Below, piece after piece: positions 16,052 to 41,983 of a stretch of DNA of 42,041 nt. Below the pieces are notes generated by a model. The model did no database searches, had not been told where the DNA came from, and was given only the letters and a program-made list of their open reading frames with translations. Position numbers and translations under genes: made by a program. Source of the DNA: Octopus bimaculoides (taxonomy: Eukaryota); assembly GCF_001194135.2 (NCBI RefSeq), contig NC_068990.1, positions 14,913,977-14,956,017 on the forward strand, given 5' to 3'. Position 1 is the first letter of the stretch; every line of letters starts with the position of its first letter.

Positions 16052-16091
<40 letters not shown>

Positions 16092-16095
16092 ACTA

Positions 16096-16126
<31 letters not shown>

Positions 16127-17839: not shown

Positions 17840-17875
<36 letters not shown>

Positions 17876-21997: not shown

Positions 21998-24900
21998 ACT
22001 CTCAGAGTGGTTGGCATTAGGAAGGGCATCCAGCTGTAGAAACTCTGCTAAATCAGATTGGAGCCTGGTGTAGCCATCTGGTTCACCAGTCCTCAGTCAA
22101 ATCGTCCAACTCATGCTAGCATGGAAAGCGGACGTTAAACGATGATGAGGATGATGATGAATAACAATAATGATGATGGTTTCAAACTTTGGTACAAAGG
22201 TAGTAATTTTAGGAGGTTGAGGTTATTTGCACATTTTTTGAAATAACTAAGGATTGAAGTTAAAGAAAGTTTCCTTTTCTATATTTAAGAGGATTAATAA
22301 AGTTCATTGATTAGTTAACATTAATCATCTACATGCAACATCTTGCAAGCAGGAAATCAATTCTAACAATGGCGCCCACTGTGTAGCAAGGCAAGTGAGC
22401 GTGCTAGTTAAAGACTTTAGAAGAATTTGGGGACTTTGGACTAAAACTATTCAAAAGTTTCACGCTGACAAAAATTAAATGAAAAATACCTCATCATCAT
22501 CATCATCAACATCAGTGTTGTCATTGCCACTGCTGCCATCGTTGTTGGTGTTATTATTGTTGTCATGATTTAACCCTTTTGATATTAATCCGGCTGTAAC
22601 CAGCTCTGTAGTACAAATGTCTTGTTTCATAAGTTTTGAATTAAAATCTTCCACCAAACCTTAGTTACAATTTATGTTCTTAACACTAGCTTAATGATAA
22701 CTAAGTTATTTTACTAAATTCTTTGTTATATTTAAATTTAATTGAAAGAAACACAGAGCATCTCAAAATAAAAATGGTAATGAAAGGGCTAAATCCATAT
22801 TCCATGCTGGCATGGGTTGGACAGTTTGACAGGGTCTGATGGGCTCAAATACTGCATTGCATTTCAGTATCTGTTTTGGTATAGTTTCTATAGCTGGATA
22901 CCTTTCCTTGTAGTTTTCTGGTCCCTTGTTCTGAAGGTTCTTGGAATCCATACAACTTTGCAGTGTGTGCTGGCTGCTTTATTCATGCCACCAGCACCAG
23001 TGAGATTGCTATGCAGCTTTGAAGACTACGAGCCTCAAGTTGAGAGGGGTAACTTCATGCTAGGACAATAAGGTGTAGAGCGGTCTAAAGTATGAGAGAA
23101 AAGGGCCAGAGTTGGTTTCTTGCTGAAGAGGAGCCAAATGTCTACTCCCATTTTAGAAGAGAGAGAGAGGAGGTGGGGAGCTAGAAATTAGGGACGAGGA
23201 GTCAGAGCGAATCTTCAAGGTACAAGGTGGATAGGAATGAGTAGAGCAGGGGTGTCAGAAGTGAGTGGGAGCAGTTGGAGTATATCTGGTGCAGAACAGT
23301 AATAGGTTTACGATGATATAATAAGTAGGACTGCACTTAGGGTTATGTAGTAAAGTAGAAAAATAAGTATTTGTTTCAAGGGAATGTTCTTTTTGCTGGA
23401 GGCTGTCACATAATGGCATAATGGTAGTGAAAGAGAGAGAGAGAGAGATTGTGCGTGTGTTCTTAAAATGGGAGAATCACTTCTAAGTTTTTTTTTATTA
23501 TTATTTTGTGTTGAAAATTCTTATCAAAAGTGGACAGAGGATACATACATTTCACATGATTTTTTAAAATACCTATGTCTTGAAAAAATTTTGAAAATTG
23601 CATATAATTCAATAAATTTAAAAAATGCAATATCTTTTAATTTATCGAAAATTTAATGCTTAAGATTATGTAGTGAAGTAGAAAACCAGTAAATTTGTTT
23701 TAAGGAAATAGATAATGAAAGATTTCAAAAACATTCTTTATTGTATGTAATTTTTTCAAAACTTTCTTGTAAAATGTTTTGTAAAATGTTGAAATTTTGT
23801 TTTAATTTCAGAAAAACCTGTATGCAAATTCACAAATATTATGAAAGATCCTGATATCCTGCCAACAAGTGCTATTCAAGCTTCAAGTTATAACATCAAT
23901 AATAAAGCAGAAGATATTCGACCTGGTGAACAGTTGTGGTATTCTGCAGATAAAGACAAGTTTCCACACATAACCATTGACATCTCAAATATTAATTCCC
24001 CAATGGAAAAGGTTTCTTTAGCTCGCCCTCACAATATTAAATCATTTGAAGTTCTCTTAATGAATGGAAAAAAAGTACTTAAAACATACAAGGTAACTGT
24101 TTAGTTATAAAATAATACACACACACACACACATTTGGGTACAGGGATGGCTGTCAAAGTAAGTTTGCCTTGAAATTGCATGTTTGTACTGTGTAACCCC
24201 TTGGGTCATACAGTGCAAACCACAGTTTGACCAACAACCTTGTGAGTTTTGGTAGAGAGAAACTGTGCAGAAACTTATATATATATATATATATATAAAG
24301 TGAAGGAATAAAGATATTAAGTCTGGGCAGGTACCTTACAAGTATTCTAATATAATCCAGGTTCCAATTATTTTTAATGTCTTGTATATATATATATGTA
24401 TGTATATATATNNNNNNNNNNNNNNNNNNNNNNNNNNNNNNNNNAAAATAAGCAACAAGGATATCCAAAGTTAATGCAGTACGATCGTTTCATGCTATTC
24501 CATTTAATTAAGCAATGTGAACATTACATCAAATGTAAAATGCAGAGCAATCCTCAGTTGCACAAAGATATAGAAATTTACTGAAATTACATTTCAACAG
24601 AAGGACATATTTTTATAACTACATTTAAACTCTCCAAGTAGAAAGGAAGAATACAAAAAACCATTTTGACTTAGCCAGACCATACAGGCTAGTAAATAAT
24701 TCTAAGCAGATTTTTAACTGTCACTGATTTTATTTGTTTTTTTTTGTTTCTGATTTATGGATCATTTTATCAGACCTAGTGATTCAAACCTTAAGAGGGC
24801 ACTGGCATTTTCTTTGTAGGCAACGGAAAGGGGTAAACTATATAGACAGTAAACATGGATGATATAGTTATAAAATTTCTTATCATCCATGTTTACTGTC

Positions 24901-26903
24901 TATATTGTTTACTCTTTTCCCTACAAAGATAATGCCAGTGTCCTCTTAAGCTTTGAATCACTAGGTCTGATTAATCTTACTCAACAGGGTTCATAGCTCT
25001 AAGATTAGGGAGTCTCTCCAGGTTGAGCCACTACTTTTCTGTATTGAGAAGCGGTATTTCGTCTGTCTTTACGTTGAGTTCAAATTCCACCAAGGTCGGC
25101 TGCCTTTCATCCTTTCAGGATTGATAAATTAAGTACCAGTTATGCACTGGAGTCGATCTAATTAACTGGCCTCCTCCCCAAAATTTTTGGGCCTTATGCC
25201 TAGAGTAGAAAGTATACATTTTGAGTTCAGGCTGACTTCTTTTACTCTTTGCCAGACAGATGAAATAAGCATTTGAGTAGATAGATAAGCATGACTAAAT
25301 GCTTAAAGGTGGCACATTAGCATTCCTACAGGCAGATGATTTAAAAATAAACTGAAAGAATACTGAAATAATGTGAATTACTTTTTAAAATAAAATCTAT
25401 TTCGTTTAATATCTTATAACTTTTAGGCTAACACAAGACAAGGAGTAAATTTATATGACAAAACAGCAACTCATATAAAGGTGAATTTATTTCCGATCGA
25501 TGTCAAACAATGCATTGCTACAGAAGTTTCGATCTTTGCTTGTATGAGTGAAAGTCCAAGTAAGTTAATTCGTTAAGTTATTGCATTAATAGCTAAACTT
25601 CTTTTATTTCTTTAGTAAAGTAATCCACCATTGACATCATAAGTAAATATCATTGCCACTGCTACCACCACAACCCCACCACCACCACCACCACCACTAC
25701 CACCACCACTACCACCACCACCATCTCGATTGTCATCATTGTCATCGTCATCATTATCACCATTATCATAATTGTCATAATTTACACTGTTACTGAAATA
25801 AGTAGGTAAAACTTCATTGTTTCTTCTAAGCCAATTACAGACAGTTTGTTTCATAAATATAAGCTCTCAAATTTAGGAAGATGGTATACTCAATTACATG
25901 AGCTTCAGTACTTCACTGGAACTTTAAGTACTCAGAGAAATGAAACAAGGCTGAGTATGGTGAATTTCAAACACTGAGCATGGAGGGAGACAACTAAATA
26001 CTTTGAGGCATTTTTGCATAATATTCTACAAATTCTCCAAATTTCTAAACTAATTTGTAACCTTCAAAAAAGAATTGAATTTATTAGTAAAATTTCACTG
26101 TATTAATGTTTCTCTCTCTCTCTCTTGTTTGTTTGTTAATAAATGAATGACTGATAAAAGAACAGAAGTTATATAATCACCTTTAGCTTACATCTGTTTT
26201 GGCTATATAGAAACGTGCACATTGAGCTGGGTGCCAGTGGAACATTTAATAGCTTCTTCAAAGCCAGTTATATGAAGTTTTTATTGAGGAAAACATTTGA
26301 ATATATACACACATGTATGATATTATATTATATCATTTGTTTGTATTCATGTGCACAATTATATATTTAAATACTTGACAATAAGATGTCTCACTAGTAC
26401 TTCTTACAAAAGCTGGCTATAGCTTTTTAATCTCTGTTGAAGCCGTCCATGTCACATCTCACAGCTTTTATAGTATTCATAGAGCATTGAACAGCAGTTA
26501 TGATGTTGGCATTTTGATACCTAGTGTGAGTCATTATCATACAGGTAGCACTTTTCCAATATTCCGATAGCTTTCAGTTCTCCATGTCAGCTAATTTTTT
26601 CTCAACAACTTTTAATCTTTATGTTGTTATACACCACTGACTGTCTGCCAATACATGAAGCTCCTCTTGAATAAATATGACATAACAAATCGTCACATTT
26701 AGCCCCCACAGTGTAACCTCGTGGATATCATTGGCTATTTTTTCTTCCTCCGTCTTTCCCTTCTTAGGACTTTCTTTGTTTCCGACGAAGAGCTCCGCTC
26801 GAAACATCAAATTCTCTTTCTTTCCTTTCCTGAGCGTCCAGTAACACAATCTGTATCACGTCCTCACTTTGTTGTTGCTTTTTTGTCTTTTTCCGTTTTT
26901 GAA

Positions 26904-26941
<38 letters not shown>

Positions 26942-27316: not shown

Positions 27317-27353
<37 letters not shown>

Positions 27354-30300
27354 TGTGTGTGTGTGTGTGTGTGTTTGTGTGTGTGCATACATAAATACAT
27401 ATATGCATATATACACACACACATAAATCTATATTTATTCATACATATATCATATTTGCCTTTATATGTAGCATCTAGTATCATCTTAGATTCAATCCAT
27501 GTAAATAAATGTATTCTTTTAAAATCTAAATTAATTAATAATGTTACATTTACTTTCATTTCTTTAATAGTAACCACACCTGAGGTAACCACCATATTAA
27601 CCCCAACTACATTTCTACCAACCAGTTAGTATACTTATTTATTCACTTATTGATTAAATTTTTCACATTAGATATTAAATTTATGATTTTACTATATCTA
27701 ATGACTCTCATTTTGATTTGATATTGCAAAACTCAAAGTAAAAATCTAATTTACTATTTCATATTTTGATTATACTGTTATATACAACTGCATCTCTATT
27801 AATGGCACCCTAACCTGTAACAGAGACAGGAATGATACAATGAGTGAGCCTCTACACAGTCGTTCATCCAACTAGAAATAGCAGCCAACTTCCATTAAAT
27901 CACTCTGCTTTCATGAACTCTTTGTTTGTCCTGTGTATCACATATTACCCTGGCATCTATGTGTCGTATGATGCAAATATCCAATTTTTTGGATATCTGT
28001 ATAAATCACTTAATAAATCACTGTATACCAGAATTCAGTGCAGAATTAAAATTACCATATAATATCTAAGCTGTTATATTGGTTGATATTTGCCCTGGAA
28101 CTCACTATTAGGTTTGTATGTGTTTGAGTTAGACTGAGTGACATTACAAAACAAAAACCAACAAGTAGTAGATATGGTTTTAAAAACTTTCTATTTGTTT
28201 TAAATGGAATCTATAAAGAATATTTTATAATTTTAACTAACGTTTCTGATAAGGCATTTAATTTCTTTTGTAGAATCATGGTGCATATTCAATGATGGCT
28301 TGGCAGAGCATACTTTAGTAAGAAACACAGATATCAATTTGTCAAGCAATGATGAAAACAAAAATGTTATTCGACCAGGAGGAAAAGGTTGGAAACCAGC
28401 AAAAGAAGATAAGAAACCGTTTGTTAGCTTTTTTGTTGGTGATTCTTTGAGGTATGGTGCATCTATACATCTAGGCAAGGCTAAAGATATTAAAAGTTTT
28501 GATGTTATTCTAAGTGGAGGTGAAAATAATAAGAAATATATGGTGAGTTTACAAAACAATGTTTGACTACTTTTTTTAATGCAGTAAAATGAACAGTTAC
28601 ATCATGGTAGAGTTATTCAAGCTGTCAAATAACACACAGAACTGTTCAAGTCACTTTTAACTTATTCCATAAAGTGTCAAAATGTCTCCCACAAATACAA
28701 CCTGGTCCCTGATACAGTTTCACAACTGTTCAAAAGCTTGGTCCCTGTAGGTCTCAGTTTTTGTCTATTTTTATTTCATATAAGACTTAAGGATATATGG
28801 GTTTGCTGTGTTTATGTAAATTTTGACCGCATAACCTTGGGCAATAATCTTTAGTAACTTTCAGTTTCTATTATTTTTATTGTATATATAGCATTGTGAC
28901 CATTCCACTTATTCCTTCATTTCTTCTTTCTTTTCTTGAATGTTAATTTTGAATGTAATTCTTCCATGGTTGAGATTTAAATATTGCACTGTCAAATTTA
29001 TTATCATTCTGTCCTGTAATAGTCTTTACTATCTTATTATCCCTAACTACCTTGTTCCAACTTTATCATAGTGTGGAAGGCATATTCCATTTTCATCAGT
29101 TTTTAGATGAAGAAAGGTATGTAAGCTGAAGTGAAGATAACAAATTTGGCTTTTTAACCAACCTCTCCTTTTCTGAGGATCAAACGCTGGAGTTGGCACA
29201 TTACCTTACCAGCACCTGCAATTCCAGCATTCGATTCAGCCTCCTGCTTCCCATCAGTTATAAAAACAGCTCTGAAATACTTGTCTCAGATCAAAATTAT
29301 TCTAGGTGAATATAACAAACCCATATTTCAAAGTTCAATACCGTGAGGTGGGGCGGAGCGAGAAGAAATCTAAAAACTATCAGGACTGATCTTGAACAAA
29401 CTTTTAAAAAGTTGTAATGGAACTATGCTAGTCACCAGGTCACGGTTATGCAATGAAAATATTTGACATGTCATGAAATAAGTTAAAGGTGAATTTAACA
29501 GATCTGTGTGCACTATTAACCCTTTAGCATTTAAACTGGCCATATCTGGCCCAAATATTCTACCTGTTTTATGTTCAAACTGATTAGATCTGGCCTCCTA
29601 CACCTACCCTACAATGCCATTCTAAAAAAATAAACAATCATATCAAAATCTCAAGGCCACAAGATAATGTGTGATAAATTCAAAGCAATATGAATGAATA
29701 AGAATTACATTTGATAGGGTAATCTGAATGTAAAGGGTTAAATGGCAAGGAGTACTCTTCCACAATGTGATTTGCTTCAGTTTTAATACATGATCTCTGA
29801 TAAAGTCACTTGCTAGACAAGTACAATTCCATAAAATAAATGTTTTAAAACCATGTCGTCTAAATTATATTTTGAAATAATTGTTTGTCAGAAGAAATTA
29901 TATTCTTGATTAAATATTGAGTATATTTACTTCTAAAATATAAATAAAGAAATTAATTGAAATCCTGGATTATGATTATTGCTAACTGTATGTAATATCG
30001 TTGCTAAGATTTGCTGCTAGTAAATTTGGAAAATATGGTTTTGTCATTTGATTATTTACTATGAAATTACTATTTTAAAATAATTGAAGAAACTATGTCA
30101 GCTAGGATAAATTTTGTTACATTAATTTTGTTAAGATGTGTGACCAAATGGTTTGGGTGTTGCACCAGTGACCATAAGACCATGGTTTCAATTATTTTCA
30201 TACTGGGCAATGCATTGTGTTCTTGAGCAAAACACTTCATTTTACATTGTTCTGGTTTGCTCAGCTTTGAATGAGTTCCAACAATTACTCAGAAGTTAAC

Positions 30301-33052: not shown

Positions 33053-33083
<31 letters not shown>

Positions 33084-36000
33084 ATTGAACATGTGAAATA
33101 ATTTACACCTGGTGCTATGGTGTTAGAGCAGATACCTGGTCATACAATAGATATTAATACATGCTTCTTTACTTCTGTTTTCAAAGTTAGATAAAGAAAC
33201 AGAAAATAATATAATGCACATACTTTTGTCAGATTATCCATTAACGCAGTTCATTCTCTTCTACTTGTGTATCCAATACAGGAAAATTTGAAAGACACTG
33301 TTGTTAAAATTCCATTTGGCACCACATCGCCTACCATAAAGATTTACTTCCAAGGTGTCCCAGGTGACTGTGACATGGCTGTAACAATATCTATAAAGGG
33401 GTGCTTTGAATCACGATGTAAGTATATTAATCTGCAAGTAACTCATCTTGACGTTGTTTTCTTTAACTTACCACATAACTAGTACAATTTATCTCTTATT
33501 ATGATACATTTATGTTTGTGTGTATGCATATGTTTATTAGTTATTCAGGGGGCCATAATGAATGGTTCCTATAAGCTTTAACCTTCTTCCCAACCTGGTT
33601 AGACTGATGTAGTTTATGGTCATTTGATCCTCTATTGTTCAACTACAAGGCTGAATTAAGAGCCATAAAGTTCCTAACCATTTAAAAGATTTTGGTGCCC
33701 ACCCCTATATATGTAATTGAAAATATAAACAATAATAAACCATAAAATAATCTTTATAAGGGATTAAAAATAAAAATGGTGAATGTATGTCTTCCAAACT
33801 GTAGTTGTTTTAGTTTCAATGCAGTCACAGATCAAATCACTTGCCTGACAAATTCATCTCCAAAAACCTTACATTAGCATATAGAAACAATGGTATATTA
33901 GAAACGTAAATCATGTTAAACTAATTTTAGACATTTAAAACTCCCTGTAATTCATATCTTGTCAATTTTCATTTTGATTTTAGCTACAACACCTCTTCCA
34001 ACATCAACAGCACAACCAACAACAGCAACAGGTATAATGATTAAAAGACACTTTTTCAATTTCTTTAATATGAAAAATCTAAAGAATCTTTCTAAAATTT
34101 TATACAAAATTTTATCTAATAATGAATTGAATTTCTTCTGTAGAGTCTTGGTGTGTATTCAATGATGGTTTGGCAGATCATACTTTAATAAGGAACTCGG
34201 ATATTGATTTGTCAAGCAATGATGAAAACAAAAATGTTATTCGGCCAGGAGGAAAAGGCTGGAAACCAGCAAAAGAAGATAAGAAACCATTTGTTAGCTT
34301 TTTTGTTGGTGACTCCTTGAGGTATGGTGCATCTGTACGTCTGGGCAAGGCTAAAGATGTTAAAAGTTTTGATGTTATTCTAAGTGGAGGTGAAAACAAT
34401 AAGAAATACATGGTGAGTCTACTGAAATGATGTTTGTCTTTCACAATAATAAAATATAAAATGTTATAAAACTATATGATGTTGGTTATATTATTTTGAA
34501 ATATTTCTTTGTCAACACAGATAACATGCATGGTTAGATATTGAGTATCTTTAGTTTTAAAATATAAATACATAAAATAAAATTCCGCATTGTAACTATT
34601 AATGTTAGATATATATAACATTCAATATTGTTAAATTTAACTTTTAGTAAGCATAAAAAGAGTTTTTTCTTCATTTAATTACTGACTGTAAAATCATTAG
34701 GTAAAAATTACCAAGTAATTATGTGAGAACAAGTTTATTTATTTTATTCTAGTTGTGAGTTAAGATTTCATTGTAATATTCTATAACATGTTTTATTTAT
34801 GTTGTTGAATTCAAAAATGAAGAAAAAAATTATTATTGTTACCGTGACACTTTTTCTCATATTATTCACAAATATAATCATCTTTCTCTGTTTGAATATC
34901 CAGGCAAACTTAAAAGACAGTGTTGTTAAAATCCTATTTGGTACCACATCAACAACTGTAAAGATCTCTTTCAAAGGAGTTCCAGGAGATTGTAACATGG
35001 CTGTAACAGTATCTATAAAGGGATGCTTTGAATCACAATGTAAGTATTTTGAACATATGGGTATCACTTCTCCTTCTGCTTCATTTATGTAGAGTTGCAA
35101 TATAACTTGTAGCAATTTGTGTATCGTTAGTATACAGTACTGGACTACATCATAGCTAGAAAATGAAATGAATAACGAACAAAAATATTCAATAAGGAGG
35201 TTTAAAATGATTGCTAACTTTAAACTACAGTGTTTGCTAGAATACTGCAATGTATCCAAGGAGTTGAAAACATTTTGAATTGTAAAACTGTGAAAAAAGG
35301 AATTGAACAAACCTCTGGTATTAATATTTATAATATAATAAAATGTGAAGTGAAAAAGATAGGGGAAAAATACACCATAAAAGGATTGGAATATCTGCCC
35401 AGCTATCTTACTATATGCTGCCCCTTAAAAATAAAAGTGAAGATGAAAATGCTTTTTGCTTCGCATGCATTTTTCTAGGAAATAGAATTATTAAAGAATG
35501 AATGTTATGCTAGAAAATAAAAAACTGAAGAAACAAATGAATTCAATAATGATAGTAAAATATGAAGTGGACAATAGAGTATTGGCTGGACACTATAAAG
35601 CATATAATGTGATGAAAACAGATTGAATTGTAAAAAGGCGCAATAAACAAGTCATTGATACTTTTCTCATATTAAACACTCATTTAACCAAGTTTGTGGT
35701 ATTATCCATTTCCTAAAAACAGATTTCAACAACTGAAAAATTTCCCAATTTCTTAATCATATGTAATGAATAATGAAAGCTCTGACCAATTCATTTAGGT
35801 TTTTTTGATACACGGAATCCCAAAATAGTATTAATTTTGCAATTTGATTTTTCAATATGGTAGAAATCCAAGATGGCAGCCAAAATACGCAATTTTGTTA
35901 ATGAAATCAGTAGCTTTTGAGGAAATTTCAGAAAACAAAGTAGGATTAACATCTCCACCTAATGTAAATACTCATGGATGTATTATATATGATTCTTTAT

Positions 36001-36688
36001 TTTCATTCTATTAGGGAATAATCAATGTAAATTTATAAAGTGATAATTTCTTAAATTTCATTGTCTTTCATTTCCATTTCAGCCACACCTGTTCCAACAA
36101 CAACACTCCAACCCACAACACAAACAGGTAAACTATTTCTCTTTCATAGAAATATTAGTGTTTTTAGATATTGTAATAATACTCATGGTAATAATGGTCA
36201 TTTTGTTGATTTCATTTTATTTATTGATATTGTTTTCTAGAATCCTGGTGTGTATTCAATGATGGTTTGGAAGATCCCTCATTAATAAGGGCGTGGGACA
36301 TTAAATTATCAAGCAATGATAAAAGTCCAGATGCTATTCGCCCGGGTAGAAATGGTTGGAGACCAGATGAAGGTGATATGAAGCGCACAGTAACAATGTT
36401 TGTTGGTGATGCTTTAAGATATGGTGCATCTATTCATCTATTACGAGCTGTGGGTGTTGCAAAGTTCGATGTTATTCTCAGTGGAGGAGAGAATAATAGA
36501 CTTAAGGTGAGTTTCAGTGAGGTAAATTTACTATAACAATATTATCACATTAAACACTTTATTGAAATAGTTCCATAAGTTTTAGCATTATTATCCAATC
36601 CTACAGAAACGCTGCTCTCAGGGCAGTTTTCTGTTAGAATATGTCATGTTTGCTTGTAGGAAACAGCTGTGATGTGTATTTCTGCCAA

Positions 36689-36741
<53 letters not shown>

Positions 36742-36875
36742 NNNNNNNNNNTGCCATATGATAAATAGACAGGGTATAAAATTTTGTTCAAATATTCTCA
36801 AAGAGAAATTTCGTATTAACTTATATTTAATGAAATTAATTGAATGGAGGCAATAGAAAAGCAATATAAATGAGT

Positions 36876-36950
<75 letters not shown>

Positions 36951-39900
36951 TAGAGAGAGAGAGAGATTGTATCTGTTACAAAGTAGTACAGTGAATGTGT
37001 CAGTGTGTACTGGGAAAGAGAAGCGAAAAGTATTAAATGAAATAACAAAAACAATGATTGTGATTGAAGTTTGTGTGAAAGAGAATAAAGACTGAAGAGG
37101 TGATGTTGAAAAATTTAAGCATCAATATATTACATAAGAGTTTTCTAAACACTTTAGACTTTAATGCTTTCTTTTGCTAAAAGTTACATAATTCCTACTA
37201 AGTAATACACAGATTCTTTACCCCAGTATAAAATATAGAGCCCATTAAAATCGCTTATAACATAAATTATCATAGGAATATGAGATTTAAAGAATACTTT
37301 AAAAATTGTTTGACTATATGCAGAGGTGATTTGTTATATTTTTGCCTTTCTTCCCAAATTACTTGTATAACTACGTATTTGGGGACTGAAATGATCAAAA
37401 GATTGCTTGATATGATTTCCATTGATAACCATAAATAAATGTCTTTGAAAATCTTTGAAATATGCTATATGACAAGCATTTTGTGAAACAAATTATACGT
37501 TTAATTTAGAAGCAATGATAGTTTTATCTAAAGCTGTTTATATCTGCATTACCTGTCTATCCAGAACAATGAAAATAGAAATTTATAAAAATTCCATATT
37601 ATATTAGTCAAGAATCTTACAGTATTCCTTACATGTGCCTCTCTCATCCATAATATCTTTAGGCTTTTAGTCAGTTCATCTAGTGTCATCTAGCAAGTGG
37701 TTTATTAGTATTTCACTTCTAAGTTTACCATGTACTAAAGAAAGCATGTCATCTAGCAAGTGGTTAATTTAACTTTTTATTAGTGTTTCACTTCTGTTTA
37801 CCATGTACTAAAGAAAGCAGTTGGCTTTAAAAAATTACTCAGGCTTTACTGTTTCAGAGAAAAAAAAATGTCCTGCCAAGAACATCACAGATCCAGAGTA
37901 TTCTGACAACTTGGCAATAGTCAATGATCAAATGAAAGATGCCAATATCTCCCAATATGATGTGGAGAAAAAAGCCAGTAAAATTGTTCCACATAACAAT
38001 GCTACTAAGACAAAATACATATATTAGGAAAGTTTGCATTCTATGAATGGAGAAGAAATGTAAAAAAATAGAGAACTACAAATGTATTGTAAGTCATATT
38101 TCTAAATCCAAGATTGGTACAGATATGAGAATTAGTAAAGCACGGCGAGTACTTAAGTTACATTACATTAAACATAGTGAAAATACTACCAATTACTATT
38201 TTTCTCTCTTTGTTTATCTAAAACTTCCTTATCCCTTATTTTCTTCTGTATCCAGAACAATGAAAAGGATGCTATTGTTAAAATTCCATTTGGAACAACA
38301 TCAGACACAGTGAAAATCCATTTTGTTTCTGATTCACCAAAATGCAAAATGATAGTTACAGTATCTTTCAAAGGTTGTTTTGAATCGAGGTGTAAGTATA
38401 AAGCAAAACTGTAGTCAAAAGTATCATGTCATATATATATGAGAATTATTTACAATATGCTGGTGCCACATTAAAAGCATCCATATTGGTGCAATGTAAA
38501 AAGCAGCCATGCTGGTGCCATGTAAGATGCACCATACCCAAGAAGGGCATCCAGCTGTAGAAAACATGCCAAACCAGACATAGAGTTTGGTGCAGCTTGT
38601 CAGCTCCTGTCAAACCATTCAACCTGTATCAGCATGGAAAATGGATGTTAAATGATGATGATGATGACGACGATGACGACGACGACGACAACAATGACAA
38701 TGACGATTTACTTCTCTGTTGGCTGTTTCAATAATTATTACAAAACAATTTAAACAGAACATTATAGTGAATAATTTAATCATCTGCACCATCATCTTCA
38801 AAGTTTCCTTACGCATTAATAATTTTATGATCATAAGATTTGTTAATATGTTCATAAAAAACTTTATAAATACTTAGTAATAACAAAAACTTTTCATTAA
38901 ATAAATTAACAAATATCATGTATAAAAATATTGCATTTGATTGTGAATTAATATTATAAAGGGAAAATTGAATTTATCTTTGTCTTCTGTTATAAAATTT
39001 ACATACATAAAGAATATATTTTCATAATATAGCGTTCAGTTTGTATTTTAAAATGGAAGCAATTAGTAACACACAATTCTTACAAATTTAGCAAATATTA
39101 AATTGCCAAACATCTATTATAACTTCTGTTTCACCTTTTTTTCACATAGCAACAACACCAGTACCAACAACAATACTTCCTACAACCACACCTCTACAAA
39201 CAAGTAAGTGATGAGATTCATTACTTAAAGTCATTAAAAATATTGAAGATGTATATTTGAATGTTAATTTCTAAAGAATATTTTGTGAAATAATTCATGT
39301 AAATTTGTAAATTCAGTATAATGGATGGCATATGAAATTTTGTTTCCTTTCGTTTTTATCTTAGCCACACCTATTCCAACAACGCCACAACCAACAACAC
39401 AAACTGGTAAGAATATTTCCTAAATTTTGAGATATTCCATGAAGACTCATAAAAATACTTATTTAATTAACTGTTTATTTATTATTTTTTTTTACCTTTT
39501 TGCTGATTACAATTCACTCATGGATACTGTTTTCTAGAATCCTGGTGCATATTCAATGATGGTTTGGAAGATGTCTCATTAATACGAGCTTGGGACATTA
39601 AATTATCAAGCAATGATGAGAATCCAGATGCTATTCGCCCAGGTAGAAAAGGCTGGAGACCAGATGAAGGTGATATGAAGCGCACAGTAACTATGTTTGT
39701 TGGTGATGCTTTAAGATATGGTGCATCTATTCATCTATTACGAGCTGTAGGTGTTGCAAAGTTTGATATAATTCTCAGTGGAGGAGAGAATAATAGATTT
39801 AAGGTGAGTTTCAGTTAGGTAAATTTACTATAACAATATTATCAGATTAAACACTTTTCTGAAATCATCATCATCATCATCGTCATCGTTTAATGTCCAA

Positions 39901-41983
39901 TTTCCATGCTGGCATGGGCTGGACGGTTTGACTGAGGACTGAGGTCTGGCAAGCCAAAAGGCTGCACCAGGCTCCAATCTGATCTGCCAACCGCTCCAAG
40001 AGTGTAGCAGGTGCTTTTTATATGCCACCGGCATGAGGATCAGTCAGCCATGCTCGACTGGTGCTTTTTACGTACCACCAGCTCGGAAGCCAGTCAGGCA
40101 GCACTAGCAACAACTACTCTCAAATGGTGCTTTTTCACATGCCACTGGCATGGGAGCCAGTCAGGTGGCACTGGCAATGACCCCGCTTGAATGGTGCTTT
40201 TTATATACCACCAGCACAGGACCAGTCAGGCTACAACTTAAATGAATATCGAAATACTAGTGGAACCTGTGGAACTTCCATGGAACAAAATAATTAAGAG
40301 GAGCTATTTAAGAAAGAAACGATAATTTGCATTTTTATTGCATATATATATATATTATTGTTGCCTGGAGAAGAAATGTAAAAAAATAGAGAACTACAAA
40401 TGTATTGTAAGTCATATTTCTAAATCCAAGATTGGTACAGTCATAAGAATTAGTAAAGAATGGCGACTACTTAAGTGACATTACATTAAACATAGTGAAA
40501 ATACTACCAATTACTATTTTTTTCTCTTTGTTTATCTAAAACTTCCTTATCTCTAATTTTCTTCTGTATCCAGAATAATGAAAAGGATGCTATTGTTAAA
40601 ATTCCATTTGGAACAACATCAGACACAGTGAAAATCCATTTTGTTTCTGATTCACCAAACTGCAAAATGATAGTTACAGTATCTTTCAAAGGTTGTTTTG
40701 AATCAAGGTGTAAGTATAAAGCAAAACTTTTGCAAAAATTTCCTAGTCATGAATCTCACTTTTTTTTACAAAATTTTCTCATCTGTTGGCTTTTTCAATA
40801 ATTAGAAGAAAACAAATTAAATAGAACATTATAGGGAACAATTTAATCCTTCTACATTATCATCCTCAAAGTTTCATTAAGCATTAATGACTTTATAGTT
40901 ATAAGATTCATTATAAATTTACAAATACATACTAATAACAAAAACTTCAGATTGAATAAATTTTTACAAATGTGATATATAAAAATATTATATTTCATTG
41001 TGAATACATATAAAAGTTGCAATGAATATATTCCTCTTGCTTTTATTATAAAATTTTTATCCTTAAGGAATAGATTATCATAATATTGTTTGTATCTTTA
41101 AAAAGAAACAATTGCTGATAAGCAACTCTCAAATTTTGCTAATATTAACTTTCCAGGTATATAGTTGAGATTATTTTTATAACTCGAATGCTGTTCATAT
41201 GTTTTATTTTTCCATTTGACATAACACTTCTTATGCTAACTTCTAGTTTATCCTTTGTTTGCATAGCAACAACACCACTACCCACAACAATACTTCCAAC
41301 AACCACACCTCTGCCAACAAGTAAGTGAAATTTTTCATTACTTCGTCCACTCATTGTTGTTTTTTCTTGCTTGTTCATGTTTGGACTGACTATATATATA
41401 TACATATATATATATATTAAAGTCAATAAAAATACTTCAAGATATATTACATTTGATGGTATATTGACAAACAGTATTTTATCAAACATTTGATGTAAAT
41501 TTATACACTACATTTGATGGATTGTAATTGAAATTTCGTTTTCTTTCATTTTTATTGTAGCCACACCTGTTCCAACAACAACGCTCCAACCCACAACACA
41601 AACAGGTAAACTATTTCTCATCCTGTGATACATCATTTTTGTTGAAATTTGAAATAATAATTATAAAAATAATGGTATTTTCTTGATTGCATTTTATTTA
41701 TTGATATTGTTTTCTAGAATCTTGGTGTGTATTCAATGATGGTTTGGAAGATGCCTCATTCATAAGGGCTTGGGACATTAAATTGTCAAGCAATGATGAA
41801 AATCCTGATGCTATTCGCCCAGGTAGAAAAGGCTGGAAACCTGATGCAAGTGATAACAAGTGCACAGTAACATTGTTTGTTGGTGATGCTTTAAGATATG
41901 GTGCATCTATTCATTTATTAAGAGCTGTAGGTGTTGCAAAGTTTGATGTTATTCTCAGTGGTGGAGAGAATAAGAGATTTAAG
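579..41983 (+). CDS. Interior of a multi-exon gene: VWD/C8/TIL mucin-, SCO-spondin- or hemocytin-like secreted protein with one LDLa and at least 7 F5/8C-like repeats (partial at both ends)
   Basis: 34 exons with AG/GT boundaries and matching phases; VWD motifs ([17 protein letters not shown]), C8/TIL/E cysteine spacing, LDLa DCQDGSDE, repeated 2-exon beta-sandwich-like domains. No orthology test was possible, so no symbol is given. Confidence 0.93.
1090..1255 (+). mobile_element. Fragment of interspersed repeat family B (tandem ggtgccatgtaaaaagcac units then gtggttggcattaggaagggcatccagc)
   Basis: Shares motifs with the copies at 14740, 21995, 38455 and 39865. Confidence 0.7.
1993..2224 (+). 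CDS. Exon: C8 domain ([12 protein letters not shown]...[21 protein letters not shown]...YLRECALHG...KC)
   Basis: ttctttcag| acceptor, T|gtaagt donor, phase 0-1, C8 cysteine pattern. Confidence 0.93.
2411..2812 (+). mobile_element. 5'-truncated RLE-type (R4/Dong-like) non-LTR retrotransposon 3' end, copy 1
   Basis: Encodes [27 protein letters not shown]...[19 protein letters not shown], like the C-terminus of restriction-like endonuclease ORFs; flanked by (TACA)n. Confidence 0.7.
2948..3362 (+). pseudogene. RLE-type retrotransposon 3' end, copy 2 (premature stop)
   Basis: [30 protein letters not shown]; colinear with copy 1 through the 3' UTR. Confidence 0.7.
3638..3779. mobile_element. Small MITE-like hairpin element
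   Basis: 17-nt terminal inverted repeat (tttaataacagtttgac / gtcaaactattattaaa, 1 mismatch) plus imperfect inner arms. Confidence 0.55.
4044..4293 (+). CDS. Exon: 10-Cys TIL domain and start of E module (FQCPHEK...[27 protein letters not shown]...)
   Basis: ttccag| acceptor, TG|gtaagt donor, phase 1-2. Confidence 0.94.
4477..4720 (+). pseudogene. Penelope-like element GIY-YIG endonuclease fragment, frameshifted
   Basis: [27 protein letters not shown], then in another frame [32 protein letters not shown], matching the Penelope C.C..CPL.G.C..VVY / YIG.T..FK.R..H..SF pattern. Confidence 0.72.
5410..5605 (+). mobile_element. 3' half of SINE family A, degenerate
   Basis: Similarity to 145-365 and to the reverse complement of 6343-6550. 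Confidence 0.7.
5771..5963 (+). CDS. Exon: end of E module and most of TIL' ([15 protein letters not shown]...CPKNQIYY...[13 protein letters not shown])
   Basis: ttataag| acceptor, GAT|gtgagt donor, phase 2-0. Confidence 0.93.
6343..6759 (-). mobile_element. Full-length tRNA-derived SINE family A with internal CA/TA microsatellite
   Basis: Minus strand: A-box-like TGGCTGTGTGGT, B-box-like GGTTCAGTCCC, (gtaaaaga)n tail; multiple copies in the window. Confidence 0.88.
6811..7119 (+). mobile_element. tRNA-derived SINE (head X, body Y) with perfect 14-bp TSD
   Basis: ATATGAAGAAGAGT at 6797-6810 and 7120-7133; A-box TGGCTTAGTGG, B-box-like AGTTCAATTCC. Confidence 0.88.
7353..7444 (+). CDS. Exon: end of TIL' and start of E' ([30 protein letters not shown])
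   Basis: ttgtag| acceptor, TT|gtatgt donor, phase 0-2; resembles VWF [20 protein letters not shown]. Confidence 0.9.
8045..8215 (-). mobile_element. Penelope-type terminal repeat fragment containing a minimal hammerhead motif
   Basis: Minus strand CTGATGGA-GGCTG..CAGCT-GAAAC-GTT at 8125-8168; the Penelope link rests on established PLE-hammerhead association. Confidence 0.6.
8125..8168 (-). ncRNA. Minimal type I hammerhead ribozyme motif (one core substitution)
   Basis: GCAC CUGAUGG A GGCUG GAGGGUAUAU CAGCU GAAAC GUU GUGU: stem I GCAC/GUGU, 5-bp stem II, palindromic AACGUU stem III. Confidence 0.65.
8278..8360 (+). mobile_element. Short tRNA-derived element (SINE head or tRNA pseudogene)
   Basis: A-box TGACGTAGTGGT and B-box GAGTTCAATTCC, between (ATT)n and (AAT)n tracts; no clear acceptor stem. 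Confidence 0.65.
8539..9185. other. Assembly gap
   Basis: Run of N. Confidence 1.
9244..9283. repeat. Inverted telomere-like repeats (TAACCC)3..(TTAGGG)2
   Basis: ttaaccctaaccctaaccctaaccttagggttagggttaa. Confidence 0.9.
9850..9899 (+). CDS. Exon: end of E' ([17 protein letters not shown])
   Basis: tttttacag| acceptor, G|gtatat donor, phase 2-1, joins both neighbours in frame. Confidence 0.85.
10410..10794 (+). mobile_element. tRNA-derived SINE (head Z, body Y) with probable 8-bp TSD
   Basis: A-box TGGCCCAGTGG, B-box GTTTCGATCCC; ACAGTTCA at 10402-10409 and 10795-10802; 3' body shared with 6811-7119. Confidence 0.85.
10928..11269 (+). CDS. Exon: N-terminal part of D3-like VWD ([27 protein letters not shown]...GLTVLWDF)
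   Basis: tttccag| acceptor, G|gtatgt donor, phase 1-1, classic VWD start and LxVxWD motif. Confidence 0.96.
11390..11495 (+). mobile_element. Degenerate head of SINE family A
   Basis: catggctgtatgagtaagaagctt...ggttcaatctcactgc resembles the family A 5' end. Confidence 0.55.
12120..12933. other. Assembly gap predicted to hide the missing VWD exon(s)
   Basis: Run of N; the flanking exons have incompatible phases (1 vs 0) and the VWD C-terminal GLCG segment is absent. Confidence 0.9.
12934..13245 (+). repeat. GC-rich, probably transposon-derived fragment with TATAAAA motif
   Basis: GC and CpG content far above the flanks; TATAAAA near 12996; no gene-like motif. Family not identified. Confidence 0.35.
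13416..14110. repeat. Long inverted repeat: arms 13416-13580 and 13946-14110
   Basis: About 165-nt arms that are reverse complements with scattered mismatches; 365-nt spacer; arm contains B-box-like GGGTTCGAGTCCC. Confidence 0.9.
14540..14679 (+). CDS. Exon: C8 domain, first part ([28 protein letters not shown]...[11 protein letters not shown])
   Basis: tccttag| acceptor, GG|gtgagt donor, phase 0-2. Confidence 0.92.
14740..15095 (+). mobile_element. Longer fragment of repeat family B
   Basis: Homologous in reverse to 22793-23420 and in sense to 21995-22160. Confidence 0.65.
15588..15814 (-). mobile_element. piggyBac-type MITE (TTAA ends), opposite orientation to 29516-29741
   Basis: ttaatcccttaacattcagat...tattaaaaggttaa; interior is the reverse complement of the 29516 copy. 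Confidence 0.75.
15835..15944 (+). CDS. Exon: C8 domain, second part ([36 protein letters not shown])
   Basis: tttccag| acceptor, C|gtaagt donor, phase 2-1, WRT..LCP motif. Confidence 0.94.
16000..16320. repeat. Compound microsatellite (CTAT)n/(CTGT)n/(TACA)n/(TG)n
   Basis: Directly visible. Confidence 0.9.
16320..16515 (+). mobile_element. 3' half of SINE family A
   Basis: ctgcttgacaactg...gtgccccaaaatggctacactccaatgactggaac. Confidence 0.7.
16789..16944 (+). CDS. Exon: TIL domain ([24 protein letters not shown]...[15 protein letters not shown])
   Basis: ttctgcag| acceptor, G|gtaaaa donor, phase 1-1, CVEGCFCP motif. Confidence 0.92.
17521..17617 (+). CDS. Exon: end of TIL and start of E module ([32 protein letters not shown])
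   Basis: aattttag| acceptor, TG|gtaagc donor, phase 1-2. Confidence 0.92.
17930..18135 (-). mobile_element. SINE family C with Meta/MESC-like core
   Basis: Minus strand gaggtcgattttgcctttcatc...gataaattaagtaccagt after a tRNA-like head. Confidence 0.72.
18873..19104 (+). mobile_element. Internally deleted mariner element (TA TSD, about 30-bp TIRs, transposase C-terminal remnant)
   Basis: TA-ttgggttgtctggaaagtttgtgttgatt ... aatcggcacgaactttccggacaatccaa-TA; encodes [30 protein letters not shown], like mariner C-termini. Confidence 0.85.
19269..19432 (+). CDS. Exon: end of E module plus LDL-receptor class A repeat ([55 protein letters not shown])
   Basis: tatttcag| acceptor, G|gttagt donor, phase 2-1; six-Cys LDLa with acidic DxxxDCxDGSDE motif. 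Confidence 0.95.
19487..19945 (+). mobile_element. 5' half of SINE family A joined to a family-B-like 3' segment
   Basis: Head ggcatggttgtgtggttaag...ggaaactgaaagaa, CA/TG tract, then aggaaaggtatcc...cccatgtaggcatggaaaagt. Confidence 0.65.
19965..20145 (-). mobile_element. SINE family C copy
   Basis: ctggtactt...tgaaaggctaagctgacc...atttgaactcagaa, similar to 17930-18135. Confidence 0.65.
21105..21146 (+). CDS. Candidate 42-nt linker micro-exon ([14 protein letters not shown])
   Basis: Long polypyrimidine tract ending ttttag, weak donor G|gtttgt, phase 1-1, open frame; not needed to keep the frame. Confidence 0.6.
21230..21379 (-). mobile_element. SINE family C copy
   Basis: gaaaggatgaaaggcaaagtcaacctc...gctaacgattctgccagctc. 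Confidence 0.72.
21381..21520. repeat. (AAT)n microsatellite
   Basis: Directly visible. Confidence 0.97.
21520..21956 (+). mobile_element. 5'-truncated R4/Dong-like RLE retrotransposon inside (AAT)n, interrupted by the gap at 21591-21836
   Basis: [24 protein letters not shown] resembles the [22 protein letters not shown] motif; (AAT)n on both sides. Confidence 0.68.
21591..21836. other. Assembly gap
   Basis: Run of N. Confidence 1.
21995..22160 (+). mobile_element. Repeat family B 3' end with (GAT)n tail
   Basis: gtggttggcattaggaagggcatccagc...catggaaagcggacgttaaacgatgatg. Confidence 0.78.
22570..22792. mobile_element. piggyBac-type MITE, second family
   Basis: TTAA-cccttttgat ... tgaaaggg-CTAA termini. 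Confidence 0.7.
22793..23420 (-). mobile_element. Long fragment of repeat family B
   Basis: tccatgctggcatgggttggacagtttgac at the left end; homologous to 14740-15095. Confidence 0.65.
23812..24092 (+). CDS. Exon A0: N-terminal part of F5/8C-like domain 0 (EKPVCKF...SAIQASS...[23 protein letters not shown]...KTYK)
   Basis: aatttcag| acceptor, AAG|gtaact donor, phase 1-0; I.ASS, IRP..W, P.I.ID pattern resembles discoidin ITASS..ARL..W..PWLQID. Confidence 0.88.
24412..24444. other. Assembly gap
   Basis: Run of N. Confidence 1.
24769..24971. repeat. Near-perfect fold-back hairpin (MITE-like)
   Basis: Arms 24769-24864 and 24881-24971 are reverse complements; 16-nt loop. Confidence 0.92.
25043..25212 (+). 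mobile_element. SINE family C copy (5'-truncated)
   Basis: gagttcaaattccaccaaggtcggctgcctttcatcctttcagg...taagtaccagt. Confidence 0.72.
25427..25559 (+). CDS. Exon B0: C-terminal part of domain 0 (ANTRQGV...[32 protein letters not shown])
   Basis: ttttag| acceptor, A|gtaagt donor, phase 0-1; ending resembles discoidin ARYIRI.P...IALRLEL.GC. Confidence 0.88.
25655..25790. repeat. (CCA)n/(CAT)n compound trinucleotide tract
   Basis: Directly visible. Confidence 0.85.
26620..26900 (+). mobile_element. Probable Penelope-type terminal repeat with a degenerate hammerhead motif at 26779-26812
   Basis: ttt CCGACGA A GAGC TCC GCTC GAAAC ATC aaa; CpG-rich relative to the flanks. Confidence 0.5.
27571..27624 (+). 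CDS. Thr/Pro linker micro-exon, class L1 ([18 protein letters not shown])
   Basis: tttaatag| acceptor, A|gttagt donor, 54 nt, phase 1-1, homologous to the exons at 39150 and 41267. Confidence 0.8.
28274..28542 (+). CDS. Exon A1 of F5/8C-like repeat 1 (alpha type: SWCIFNDGL...[19 protein letters not shown]...KKYM)
   Basis: ttttgtag| acceptor, ATG|gtgagt donor, 269 nt, phase 1-0. Confidence 0.93.
29516..29741 (+). mobile_element. piggyBac-type MITE with TTAA TSD
   Basis: TTAA-ccctttagcatt ... gaatgtaaaggg-TTAA. Confidence 0.82.
30130..30280 (+). mobile_element. Degenerate head-X SINE fragment
   Basis: gttcttgagcaaaacacttcattttacattg matches the head X of the 6811 and 31404 copies. Confidence 0.55.
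30805..30940 (+). CDS. Exon B1 ([45 protein letters not shown])
   Basis: atccag| acceptor, A|gtaagt donor, 136 nt, phase 0-1. Confidence 0.93.
30958..31337 (-). mobile_element. Full-length SINE family A
   Basis: Colinear with 6343-6759 from tail to head; begins 17 nt after the B1 donor. Confidence 0.87.
31404..31743 (+). mobile_element. tRNA-derived SINE (head X, body W) with degenerate 13-bp TSD
   Basis: A-box TGGCTCAGTGG, B-box GAGTTCGAATCC; agtatattttgta at 31391-31403 vs agcatactttgta at 31744-31756. Confidence 0.85.
32511..32558 (+). CDS. Linker micro-exon, class L2 ([16 protein letters not shown])
   Basis: gattttag| acceptor, G|gtatga donor, 48 nt, phase 1-1. Confidence 0.9.
32672..32940 (+). 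CDS. Exon A2 (alpha type)
   Basis: ttctgtag| acceptor, AAG|gtaagt donor, 269 nt, phase 1-0. Confidence 0.94.
33282..33417 (+). CDS. Exon B2 ([45 protein letters not shown])
   Basis: aatacag| acceptor, T|gtaagt donor, 136 nt, phase 0-1. Confidence 0.93.
33984..34031 (+). CDS. Linker micro-exon, class L2 ([16 protein letters not shown])
   Basis: gattttag| acceptor, G|gtataa donor, 48 nt, near-identical to 32511-32558. Confidence 0.9.
34144..34412 (+). CDS. Exon A3 (alpha type)
   Basis: ttctgtag| acceptor, ATG|gtgagt donor, 269 nt, phase 1-0. Confidence 0.94.
34904..35039 (+). CDS. Exon B3 ([45 protein letters not shown])
   Basis: atccag| acceptor, T|gtaagt donor, 136 nt, phase 0-1. Confidence 0.93.
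36083..36127 (+). CDS. Linker micro-exon, class L2 ([15 protein letters not shown])
   Basis: catttcag| acceptor, G|gtaaac donor, 45 nt, phase 1-1. Confidence 0.9.
36241..36506 (+). CDS. Exon A4 (beta type: [14 protein letters not shown]...[22 protein letters not shown]...NNRLK)
   Basis: ttttctag| acceptor, AAG|gtgagt donor, 266 nt, phase 1-0. Confidence 0.94.
36742..36751. other. Assembly gap
   Basis: Run of N within a (TA)n tract. Confidence 1.
36880..36966. repeat. (GA)n microsatellite
   Basis: Directly visible. Confidence 0.95.
37684..37819. repeat. Local tandem duplication (63-nt and 73-nt units)
   Basis: tgtcatctagcaagtgg...ccatgtactaaagaaagca occurs twice in tandem. Confidence 0.85.
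37850..38027 (+). pseudogene. Possible degenerate LINE reverse-transcriptase fragment
   Basis: [20 protein letters not shown] resembles the RTE-type YPA..ITDADYADDLALL motif. Confidence 0.4.
38256..38391 (+). CDS. Exon B4 ([45 protein letters not shown])
   Basis: tatccag| acceptor, T|gtaagt donor, 136 nt, phase 0-1; missed by the ORF track. Confidence 0.93.
38455..38705 (+). mobile_element. Repeat family B with (GAT/GAC)n tail
   Basis: ggtgccacattaaaagca units, gaagggcatccagctgtagaaa, catggaaaatggatgttaaatgatgatg. Confidence 0.75.
39150..39203 (+). CDS. Linker micro-exon, class L1 ([18 protein letters not shown])
   Basis: ttcacatag| acceptor, A|gtaagt donor, 54 nt, phase 1-1. Confidence 0.9.
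39365..39406 (+). CDS. Linker micro-exon, class L2 ([14 protein letters not shown])
   Basis: atcttag| acceptor, G|gtaaga donor, 42 nt, phase 1-1. Confidence 0.9.
39538..39803 (+). CDS. Exon A5 (beta type)
   Basis: ttttctag| acceptor, AAG|gtgagt donor, 266 nt, phase 1-0. Confidence 0.94.
39865..40230 (-). mobile_element. Repeat family B with internal tandem units of about 60 nt
   Basis: (ATC)n tail, tttccatgctggcatggg, repeated ggtgctttttatatgccacc...agccagtcagg. Confidence 0.78.
40574..40709 (+). CDS. Exon B5 ([45 protein letters not shown])
   Basis: tatccag| acceptor, T|gtaagt donor, 136 nt; 3 differences from B4. Confidence 0.93.
41267..41320 (+). CDS. Linker micro-exon, class L1 ([18 protein letters not shown])
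   Basis: ttgcatag| acceptor, A|gtaagt donor, 54 nt, phase 1-1. Confidence 0.9.
41561..41605 (+). CDS. Linker micro-exon, class L2 ([15 protein letters not shown])
   Basis: tattgtag| acceptor, G|gtaaac donor, 45 nt, phase 1-1. Confidence 0.9.
41718..41983 (+). CDS. Exon A6 (beta type; the gene continues beyond the window)
   Basis: ttttctag| acceptor, AAG|gtgagt donor, 266 nt, phase 1-0. Confidence 0.93.

Follow-up and report, generated by a model that had tools for sequence, protein, structure and literature searches.

RESULTS

A cysteine without an intradomain partner in every complete repeat

What is an odd, conserved cysteine doing in each repeat of a secreted octopus protein? The question arises from a tandem array of discoidin-like modules in Octopus bimaculoides, contained in a window of 42,041 nucleotides (the whole stretch analysed here; assembly GCF_001194135.2, contig NC_068990.1, positions 14,913,977 to 14,956,017 of the forward strand). 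By its domain order, the locus reads as the repeat array of a secreted protein of the gel-forming-mucin/SCO-spondin type. In the sections below we argue that the third cysteine of these modules is a derived feature of cephalopods, that it probably lies exposed at the ligand-binding end of the domain, and that it may serve to cross-link modules or chains.

Each repeat is encoded by two exons: an exon A of ~89 codons, which begins after AG in phase 1 and ends in phase 0 (...AAG/GTRAGT, the slash marking the splice site), and an exon B of ~45 codons, which begins in phase 0 (CAG/) and ends in phase 1 (/GTAAGT). The window contains seven exon A and six exon B copies, strictly alternating and all on the plus strand. 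The span 23812-40709 opens with the first base of exon A1 and closes with the last base of exon B6 (Table 1). As the 3' end of the window cuts the gene, the module count is a lower bound of at least seven.

A count of codons gave exactly three cysteines in six of the six complete units: one at the N-terminus (PVC or SWC), a third cysteine (KQC, GDC in three units, PKC and PNC) and a terminal one (FAC or KGC), at the places named in a preliminary description made from the sequence alone. That description placed the third cysteine 11 residues before the terminal one, which holds for units 2 to 6 and not for unit 1, where the distance is 10 residues. The open frame shows an apparent further cysteine, in an 'RC' after KGCFES; this one belongs to the intron, its TGT being cut by the GTAAGT donor. 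No fourth cysteine was found in the six complete units or in the linkers, and because of this the third cysteine appears to have no partner inside the octopus module, which supports the earlier proposal that it is unpaired within the domain.

Class 2 encodes the third cysteine as TGT; class 3 and unit 1 use TGC. Between classes 2 and 3 the number of synonymous substitutions per site (Ks) exceeds 1, thus is saturated, while the ratio of nonsynonymous to synonymous rates (Ka/Ks) is ~0.2-0.27; within classes, Ka/Ks is 0.14-0.23. At the codon level, purifying selection on the repeat exons is evident. Unit 1 shares only ~24% identity with the other units, yet its single extra cysteine is displaced from the common column by no more than one residue, for which we roughly estimate a chance of 3/130 = 0.02. 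As had been described, the third cysteine is kept in all six complete units across all three classes, and this holds despite Ks > 1.

A discoidin-type fold outside current family models

The repeats had been called discoidin-like, and this assignment stands by predicted fold and not by Pfam. AlphaFold2 models of unit 5 (A5+B5; predicted local distance difference test, pLDDT, 90.9; predicted template modelling score, pTM, 0.87) and of unit 1 (pLDDT 77.3, pTM 0.74) share their strand order and consist of eight main strands plus an N-terminal strand in a jelly-roll, the eight-stranded barrel of F5/8C domains. The best Foldseek matches were neuropilin b1/b2, factor VIII (FVIII) C2, carbohydrate-binding modules of family 32 (CBM32), retinoschisin, CASPR2 and DDR1/2, with template modelling (TM) scores of 0.55-0.67 and a probability of 1.00 against neuropilin b1, FVIII C2, DDR1/2, CASPR2 and retinoschisin. 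Pfam gave no match for units 1, 2 and 5 at E <= 10, to PF00754 or otherwise, nor did any of 10 distant family members match at E <= 1; a sequence search of the Protein Data Bank (PDB) with single units found no match either. Alignment of a narrow and a broad family alignment to FVIII C2 with hhalign served for a register check only; the E-values of 0.41 and 0.092 are not significant, and the register was as expected. The family profile reaches the CBM32 module 4a42_A at E = 8.5e-4, the only solved protein below E 0.001. On the strength of the models, we regard the module as a compact member (133-137 amino acids) of the F5/8C discoidin/CBM32 superfamily that is missed by current family models.

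An exhaustive profile search returned 80 relatives. The large ones bear the name "mucin-2-like" and come from a nemertean, a mussel, a limpet and a chiton, among them Lineus longissimus XP_064639835.1, Mytilus californianus XP_052090877.1, Patella vulgata XP_055959230.1 and Liolophura sinensis XP_064614628.1, and an uncharacterised protein of the nemertean Tubulanus also carries the module. Judged by these sequences (P0005, P0006, P0009, P0019, P0107 and other matches), the module defines a domain family for which Pfam has no model. Two further profile matches (P0015 and P0063) were discarded as spurious, these being repetitive coiled-coil or surface-repeat proteins without the cysteine frame. 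A word-indexed protein search with three units yielded a single match, the cuttlefish protein P0001.

The third cysteine is confined to cephalopods

Throughout the family, the N-terminal cysteine is present in 76 of 77 domain instances and the terminal cysteine in 47 of 47. Since both are near-invariant, we regard them as the canonical closing pair, in line with the preliminary description, with the disulfide between them predicted from this conservation. The third cysteine was present in 11 of 50 instances, exclusively in the close cephalopod subfamily, and is missing from 26 distinct two-cysteine relatives, which belong to "mucin-2-like" proteins of molluscs and nemerteans; the cysteine count is exactly two in every complete outgroup instance (19/19). 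A further position, the tip of a hairpin (the column of Gly71 in unit 5), is a cysteine in 6 of 104 instances, all of them cuttlefish-like sequences. Because outgroup instances hold only the terminal pair, the sequence comparison identifies the third cysteine as a derived cephalopod character, one gained in coleoid cephalopods and retained by all the copies examined.

For a comparison at the exon level we used five loci from other cephalopod assemblies (L001, L002, L006, L007 and L008). For the Logan and ENA contigs used (ERR12370320, ERR12370324 and ERZ21867824), the labels cuttlefish-like and decapodiform-like refer to sequence similarity to Acanthosepion pharaonis. In the A. pharaonis locus (L001) the hairpin-tip cysteine ("K-x-K-C-V-G-K-Y-D") is found in 22 of 22 exon A copies, and the third and terminal cysteines in 21 of 21 exon B copies. 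A second cuttlefish-like assembly shows the same pattern in five exon A and five exon B copies (L002), and another locus of that assembly (L006) has four units with four cysteines, one of them with a fifth ("NCKMC"), and one unit with Gly at the hairpin tip, as in class 3 of the window, in which the third cysteine is still kept. A third lineage (L007) contributes a five-cysteine unit with a further cysteine in another apex loop, and L008 one exon B with the third cysteine. In the five loci together, the third cysteine is present in 33 of 33 exon B copies, and the hairpin-tip cysteine in 32 of 33 exon A copies outside the window versus none of the seven in the octopus window. The fetched loci contain no orthologue of unit 1 exon B, the contigs with an orthologue of its exon A being shorter than 2 kb, so that the cross-species count of the third cysteine covers units other than unit 1.

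The preliminary description had asked whether orthologous repeats keep the third cysteine and whether it is bonded within the molecule. Apart from unit 1, whose orthologue is not among the copies compared, the former is the case throughout; the latter is probably so in cuttlefish-type units, given their hairpin-tip cysteine, and not in octopus.

The number of cysteines at this end of the domain is, as far as these sequences indicate, evolutionarily labile in the cephalopod subfamily. In one five-cysteine unit (L007, 2126-2395 plus 2691-2825) the additional residue lies early in exon B, in another apex loop (NIHCQDS), and in another (L006, 3992-4126) it follows the third cysteine by two residues (NCKMCVTV). 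Exon A of octopus unit 7 also carries an extra cysteine, reading NKCTVT with Cys in place of the Arg in MKRTVT. This residue lies where the second main strand begins and shares the apex end of the barrel with the third cysteine. If its exon B keeps the usual two cysteines, unit 7 would be a four-cysteine unit with a candidate partner unlike the cuttlefish one. In the chiton protein (P0006, L. sinensis XP_064614628.1), every repeat ends in a Cys-Cys doublet (...EVFCCYE), giving three cysteines per module, and here the odd cysteine adjoins the terminal one at the base of the barrel, not at the apex.

Predicted position of the third cysteine at the barrel apex

In the model of unit 5, the penultimate strand (106-113) and the last strand (121-131) are connected by the loop 114-120, which contains the third cysteine (Cys118); the model of unit 1 has this residue in the equivalent loop 117-123 (Cys122), before the last strand. 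Counted back from the terminal cysteine, its counterpart in FVIII C2 is His2315 (FVIII sequence checked against PDB chains), and Trp2313-His2315 form a membrane-binding apex loop (title of PDB 3hnb). In DDR2 the loops L4 and L6, together with L1-3, make up the collagen trench, with the Cys73-Cys177 staple as its floor (PMC4332414). The extra cysteine of the cuttlefish type falls on a hairpin tip, with strands 62-70 and 72-80 as the arms of the hairpin. This tip is the counterpart of the Leu2251/Leu2252 spike region of FVIII C2, and in a jelly-roll the hairpin-tip loop and the last loop are neighbours at the same end. Because the two apex loops are neighbours and the equivalent DDR2 loops carry Cys73-Cys177, an intradomain staple is likely in cuttlefish-type units, in which, by analogy with DDR2 and retinoschisin, the third cysteine is probably bonded to the hairpin-tip cysteine.

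As a proxy for exposure we used the substitution pattern in the 26 two-cysteine relatives combined with the jelly-roll topology. Counted from the terminal cysteine, position -11 is polar or charged in 20 of 26, position -10 is Pro in 15 of 26 and position -9 is hydrophobic in 25 of 26, a pattern typical of a surface turn that runs on into a strand of the core. The third cysteine probably occupies a surface-exposed position at the ligand-binding apex. Extra cysteines recur at neighbouring positions of this apex: they occupy the hairpin tip, the loop that precedes the sixth strand (L007), the second residue after the third cysteine (L006) and the beginning of the second main strand (unit 7). This recurrence suggests an accessible thiol that can be bonded.

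Proposed function and alternative explanations

The octopus module would thus present one accessible, unpaired thiol at the apex of its barrel. In an oxidising, secreted polymer of the VWD type, this thiol would most plausibly form or exchange disulfides with another module; adjacent repeats, separate chains and other proteins of the matrix are candidate partners. The outcome would be many lateral cross-link points along the molecule, besides the end-to-end links of the VWD type. In cuttlefish-type relatives the same thiol would be capped within the module by the hairpin-tip cysteine, in the manner of DDR2 Cys73-Cys177 or retinoschisin Cys110-Cys142. We put the probability that the accessible apex thiol of octopus makes or exchanges disulfides with other modules or chains at roughly 40%. 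The more far-reaching idea, in which a row of exposed thiols at lectin-like apices builds a laterally cross-linked network, through disulfides or matrix thiol adducts, and decapodiforms have capped most of these points, we consider unlikely. In favour of cross-linking is the cuttlefish-like unit without the hairpin-tip cysteine, in which the third cysteine is retained. Several points weigh on the other side. Exposure of the third cysteine and the proximity of the apex cysteines were derived from topology and substitution patterns, and the modules gave no Pfam match, as reported above. The probable intradomain partner in most cuttlefish-type units means that the conserved role need not be intermolecular. 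In the last strand, the residues at -9, -7, -5 and -3 face the core, and the third cysteine shares their side-chain parity, so it could be half buried at the rim. Finally, a buried and dispensable odd cysteine is known from the DS-like domain of DDR1 (Cys287; PMC4332414).

The last two points also favour the main alternative, a free thiol that cross-links nothing, in which the third cysteine is a packing residue at the rim or half buried, kept for stability, and the cuttlefish tip cysteine is a staple added later. The inward-facing residues with which it is in parity are Met-9, Val-7, Val-5 and Phe/Ile-3, and the cysteine is retained with or without a partner. This explanation seems somewhat unlikely to us, as the two-cysteine relatives mostly have Lys, Asp, Gln or Ser at that site with Pro adjoining, the pattern of a surface turn, and as the cysteine of unit 1 is shifted by one residue, to the opposite parity, and still kept. 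Moreover, partner cysteines repeatedly arise in the surrounding apex loops, which is hard to square with burial. The third cysteine could instead be the leftover half of an ancestral apex disulfide, from hairpin tip to last loop, whose partner was lost in the octopus lineage, and the occurrence of the tip cysteine in three decapodiform-like assemblies (L001, L002/L006 and L007), including one unit with an octopus-like 'SWC' start, would fit such a history. We rate this as a long shot. An unpaired cysteine in a secreted protein is, as a general expectation, normally lost, whereas here it persists in six octopus units at Ks > 1 and Ka/Ks ~0.2, and it also survives in the partnerless cuttlefish-like unit. 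Outside the cuttlefish-like group the tip is Tyr, Gly, Asp, Phe or Asn, with Cys in no two-cysteine outgroup, and because of this absence the tip cysteine looks younger than the third cysteine.

A part in a ligand site, either in metal binding or in covalent or redox contact with a partner bearing glycans or quinones, is suggested by the position of the same loop in the ligand- or membrane-binding end of FVIII C2 and DDR2, and by the carbohydrate-binding CBM32 modules among the nearest relatives in sequence and fold. Its prospects are slim, since no conserved constellation of His, Asp or Cys accompanies the thiol, and class 2 has Ser or Tyr in place of the class 3 His of 'KIHF'. We give next to no weight to an artefact in the form of pseudo-exons, misassembly or a cysteine-bearing exon hidden in a gap, despite two assembly gaps within the range and the absence of the array from annotated proteins. 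In all 13 repeat exons the reading frame is intact, the AG/GT sites are canonical and the phases agree. Purifying selection is evident, and the same architecture is found in independent cuttlefish-like assemblies. Both gaps are bordered by microsatellite of (TA)n type. The gap-bearing introns measure 1334 nt (A1-B1) and 1749 nt (A5-B5), and the ungapped A-B introns of units 3 and 4, of 341 and 491 nt, contain no further exon. A hidden exon in either gap is very unlikely because the splice phases agree across both gaps, because units 3 and 4 consist of two exons without any gap, and because A5+B5 folds as a complete domain.

If the apex cysteine does form cross-links, this would amount to a new way of building mucus or matrix, with many lateral covalent nodes on modules of lectin fold; known gel-forming mucins polymerise end-to-end via VWD and cystine-knot domains. 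Octopus (uncapped) versus cuttlefish-type (capped) modules would then form a natural pair in which to compare the tuning of material properties. Irrespective of cross-linking, a family that Pfam does not model and an octopus array absent from gene models are of value for annotation.

Gene context and features of the window

The window has ~32% G+C and few long open reading frames, and its content reads as a split eukaryotic gene on the plus strand. The order along the gene is VWD-C8-TIL assemblies and an LDL-receptor class A (LDLa) module, followed by at least seven two-exon modules of ~134 amino acids each. The upstream exons were identified with Pfam E-values of 1.6e-20 for VWD, 1.4e-09 for C8, 1.1e-11 for TIL and 7.9e-10 for Ldl_recept_a. 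Positions 579-17618 comprise two VWD, three C8 and three to four TIL exon pieces (Pfam), the VWD-C8-TIL combination of gel-forming mucins and VWF-type polymers. The many thrombospondin type 1 and LDLa repeats that follow the VWD region in SCO-spondin were not found; the window has one LDLa exon and no thrombospondin type 1 repeat. Gel-forming mucins and VWF-type polymers also have long Pro/Thr/Ser-rich, O-glycosylated domains; between the modules of the window lie only short linkers of ~14-32 residues.

The nearest named relatives are an O. bimaculoides "VWFD domain-containing protein" and a "SCO-spondin", at 36-41% identity; as a name, 'SCO-spondin' belongs here only to paralogues of 30-41% identity. 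A database protein of 679 amino acids (P0089) matches the upstream exons at ~100%, and because of this we take it to be the species' own, fragmentary gene model. It continues upstream of the window with a further TIL and VWD, and ends at the VWD exon immediately before the assembly gap 12120-12933. The octopus repeat array (23812-41983) was found in no protein of the databases searched, and appears to be unannotated coding sequence without a place in current gene models.

Table 1. Exons, linkers and assembly gaps along the octopus window
Feature	Position	Strand	Remarks
VWD, C8, TIL, TIL, VWD, C8, TIL and LDL-receptor class A exons	579..19434	+	Pfam; P0089 ~100%
Unit 1 exon A (divergent class 1)	23812..24092	+	N-terminal Cys codon 23823-23825
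Assembly gap in A1-B1 intron, microsatellite-flanked	24412..24444		no exon interrupted
Unit 1 exon B	25427..25559	+	third Cys 25511-25513; terminal Cys 25541-25543
Pro/Thr linker mini-exon, Cys-free, phase 1 to 1	27571..27624	+	
Unit 2 exon A (class 2)	28274..28542	+	N-terminal Cys at 28282
Unit 2 exon B	30805..30940	+	third Cys 30892-30894 (TGT); terminal Cys 30925-30927
Unit 3 exon A (class 2)	32672..32940	+	N-terminal Cys at 32680
Unit 3 exon B	33282..33417	+	third Cys 33369-33371; terminal Cys at 33402
Pro/Thr linker mini-exon	33984..34031	+	
Unit 4 exon A (class 2)	34144..34412	+	N-terminal Cys at 34152
Unit 4 exon B	34904..35039	+	third Cys 34991-34993; terminal Cys at 35024
Pro/Thr linker mini-exon	36083..36127	+	
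Unit 5 exon A (class 3)	36241..36506	+	N-terminal Cys at 36249; Gly71 = hairpin tip (Cys in cuttlefish-type units)
Assembly gap in A5-B5 intron, (TA)n-flanked	36742..36751		no exon interrupted
Unit 5 exon B	38256..38391	+	third Cys 38343-38345 (TGC; Cys118 of modelled domain); terminal Cys 38376-38378
Pro/Thr linker mini-exon	39150..39203	+	
Pro/Thr linker mini-exon	39365..39406	+	
Unit 6 exon A (class 3)	39538..39803	+	N-terminal Cys at 39546
Unit 6 exon B	40574..40709	+	third Cys 40661-40663; terminal Cys at 40694
Pro/Thr linker mini-exon	41267..41320	+	
Pro/Thr linker mini-exon	41561..41605	+	
Unit 7 exon A (class 3)	41718..41983	+	exon B beyond window; extra Cys 41861-41863 (NKCTVT)

The Pro/Thr linker mini-exons measure 42-54 nt, run from phase 1 to phase 1, follow the units singly or in pairs and contain no cysteine. 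In the interval between units 2 and 3 (30941-32671) we found no usable linker exon. The only linker-like open segment there (~31972-32003) was rejected because its length does not fit splicing from phase 1 to phase 1. It resembles a linker exon that has decayed, and the connection between units 2 and 3 may be as short as ~6 residues.

Further upstream, the second VWD exon (~10930-11268) is not followed, in the interval 11268-14540, by a C-terminal exon of the 'GLCG...' type before the next C8 exon, and the only exon of this type in the window, at 585, is part of the first VWD. The missing exon probably lies inside the 814-N assembly gap 12120-12933. Introns of the gene also contain dispersed repeats, namely 6563-6766 with 31141-31344 (81% identity) and 2410-2630 with 2963-3183 (75%). 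In translation the first pair gives a peptide resembling 'MAQWLG...VVSSNPRPG', and a similar peptide occurs at ~10269-10505. These repeats are probably fragments of interspersed mobile elements; an origin from a tRNA-derived short interspersed element was not supported, as ARAGORN found no tRNA-like genes.

DISCUSSION

Comparison with known discoidin and mucin systems

With F5/8C domains such as factor VIII C2 and neuropilin b1/b2, the octopus module shares the eight-stranded distorted jelly-roll (TM 0.55-0.67), N- and C-terminal cysteines at the canonical closing positions, and the motifs 'I-x-x-SS' and 'GW-x-P' in the expected register. It differs in being shorter (133-137 versus ~155 amino acids), with trimmed apex loops, and in having one extra cysteine in the last loop, at the equivalent of FVIII His2315. 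A top structural match is a bacterial CBM32, Clostridium perfringens GH89 CBM32-6 (PDB 4a42; TM 0.63/0.65, rmsd 3.6), which is of similarly compact size. CBM32 modules occur in glycoside hydrolases and have no terminal disulfide, and the octopus module is likened to them by fold and by a borderline sequence similarity.

In the discoidin domains of DDR1 and DDR2, the last apex loop, L6, takes part in a second disulfide at the floor of the ligand trench (PMC4332414). The DDR2 L6 loop with Cys177 is the same apex loop as that of the octopus third cysteine, and the DDR Cys73-Cys177 bond is, by analogy, a likely model for the four-cysteine units of the cuttlefish type, which have two apex cysteines in 32 of 33 exon A copies and a predicted bond between them. 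The two systems differ in that the DDR partner cysteine follows a conserved Trp ('W-C-P') instead of occupying a hairpin tip, and that DDR Cys177 lies 8 residues before the terminal cysteine, compared to 11 for the octopus third cysteine. The complete octopus units have a single apex cysteine each, and no staple between two neighbouring apex loops was found in them. The DS-like domain of DDR1 indicates that a conserved odd cysteine is possible in a discoidin fold; DDR1 Cys287 is buried (PMC4332414), whereas the octopus third cysteine occupies a position that is polar in relatives.

Retinoschisin (RS1), a Foldseek match (3jd6), is a discoidin-domain protein oligomerised by disulfides. It is secreted and has a terminal pair (Cys63-Cys219), an apex staple (Cys110-Cys142) and an intermolecular bond (Cys59-Cys223) (PMC5978886). 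The intermolecular cysteines of RS1 lie just outside the barrel at its base, and not in an apex loop like the octopus third cysteine, and RS1 is a single-domain protein without a tandem array. The lophotrochozoan "mucin-2-like" proteins repeat the same Pfam-silent domain between Pro/Thr-rich linkers, and the Lineus protein combines it with VWD-C8-TIL and LDLa modules, as does the octopus gene. Their domains have only the two terminal cysteines (19/19 complete domains), the chiton Cys-Cys doublet excepted, and none has a cysteine in an apex loop. Compared to these systems the fold itself is known, and what is new here is a lineage-specific apex cysteine in a module of F5/8C/CBM32 fold inside a mucin-type gene.

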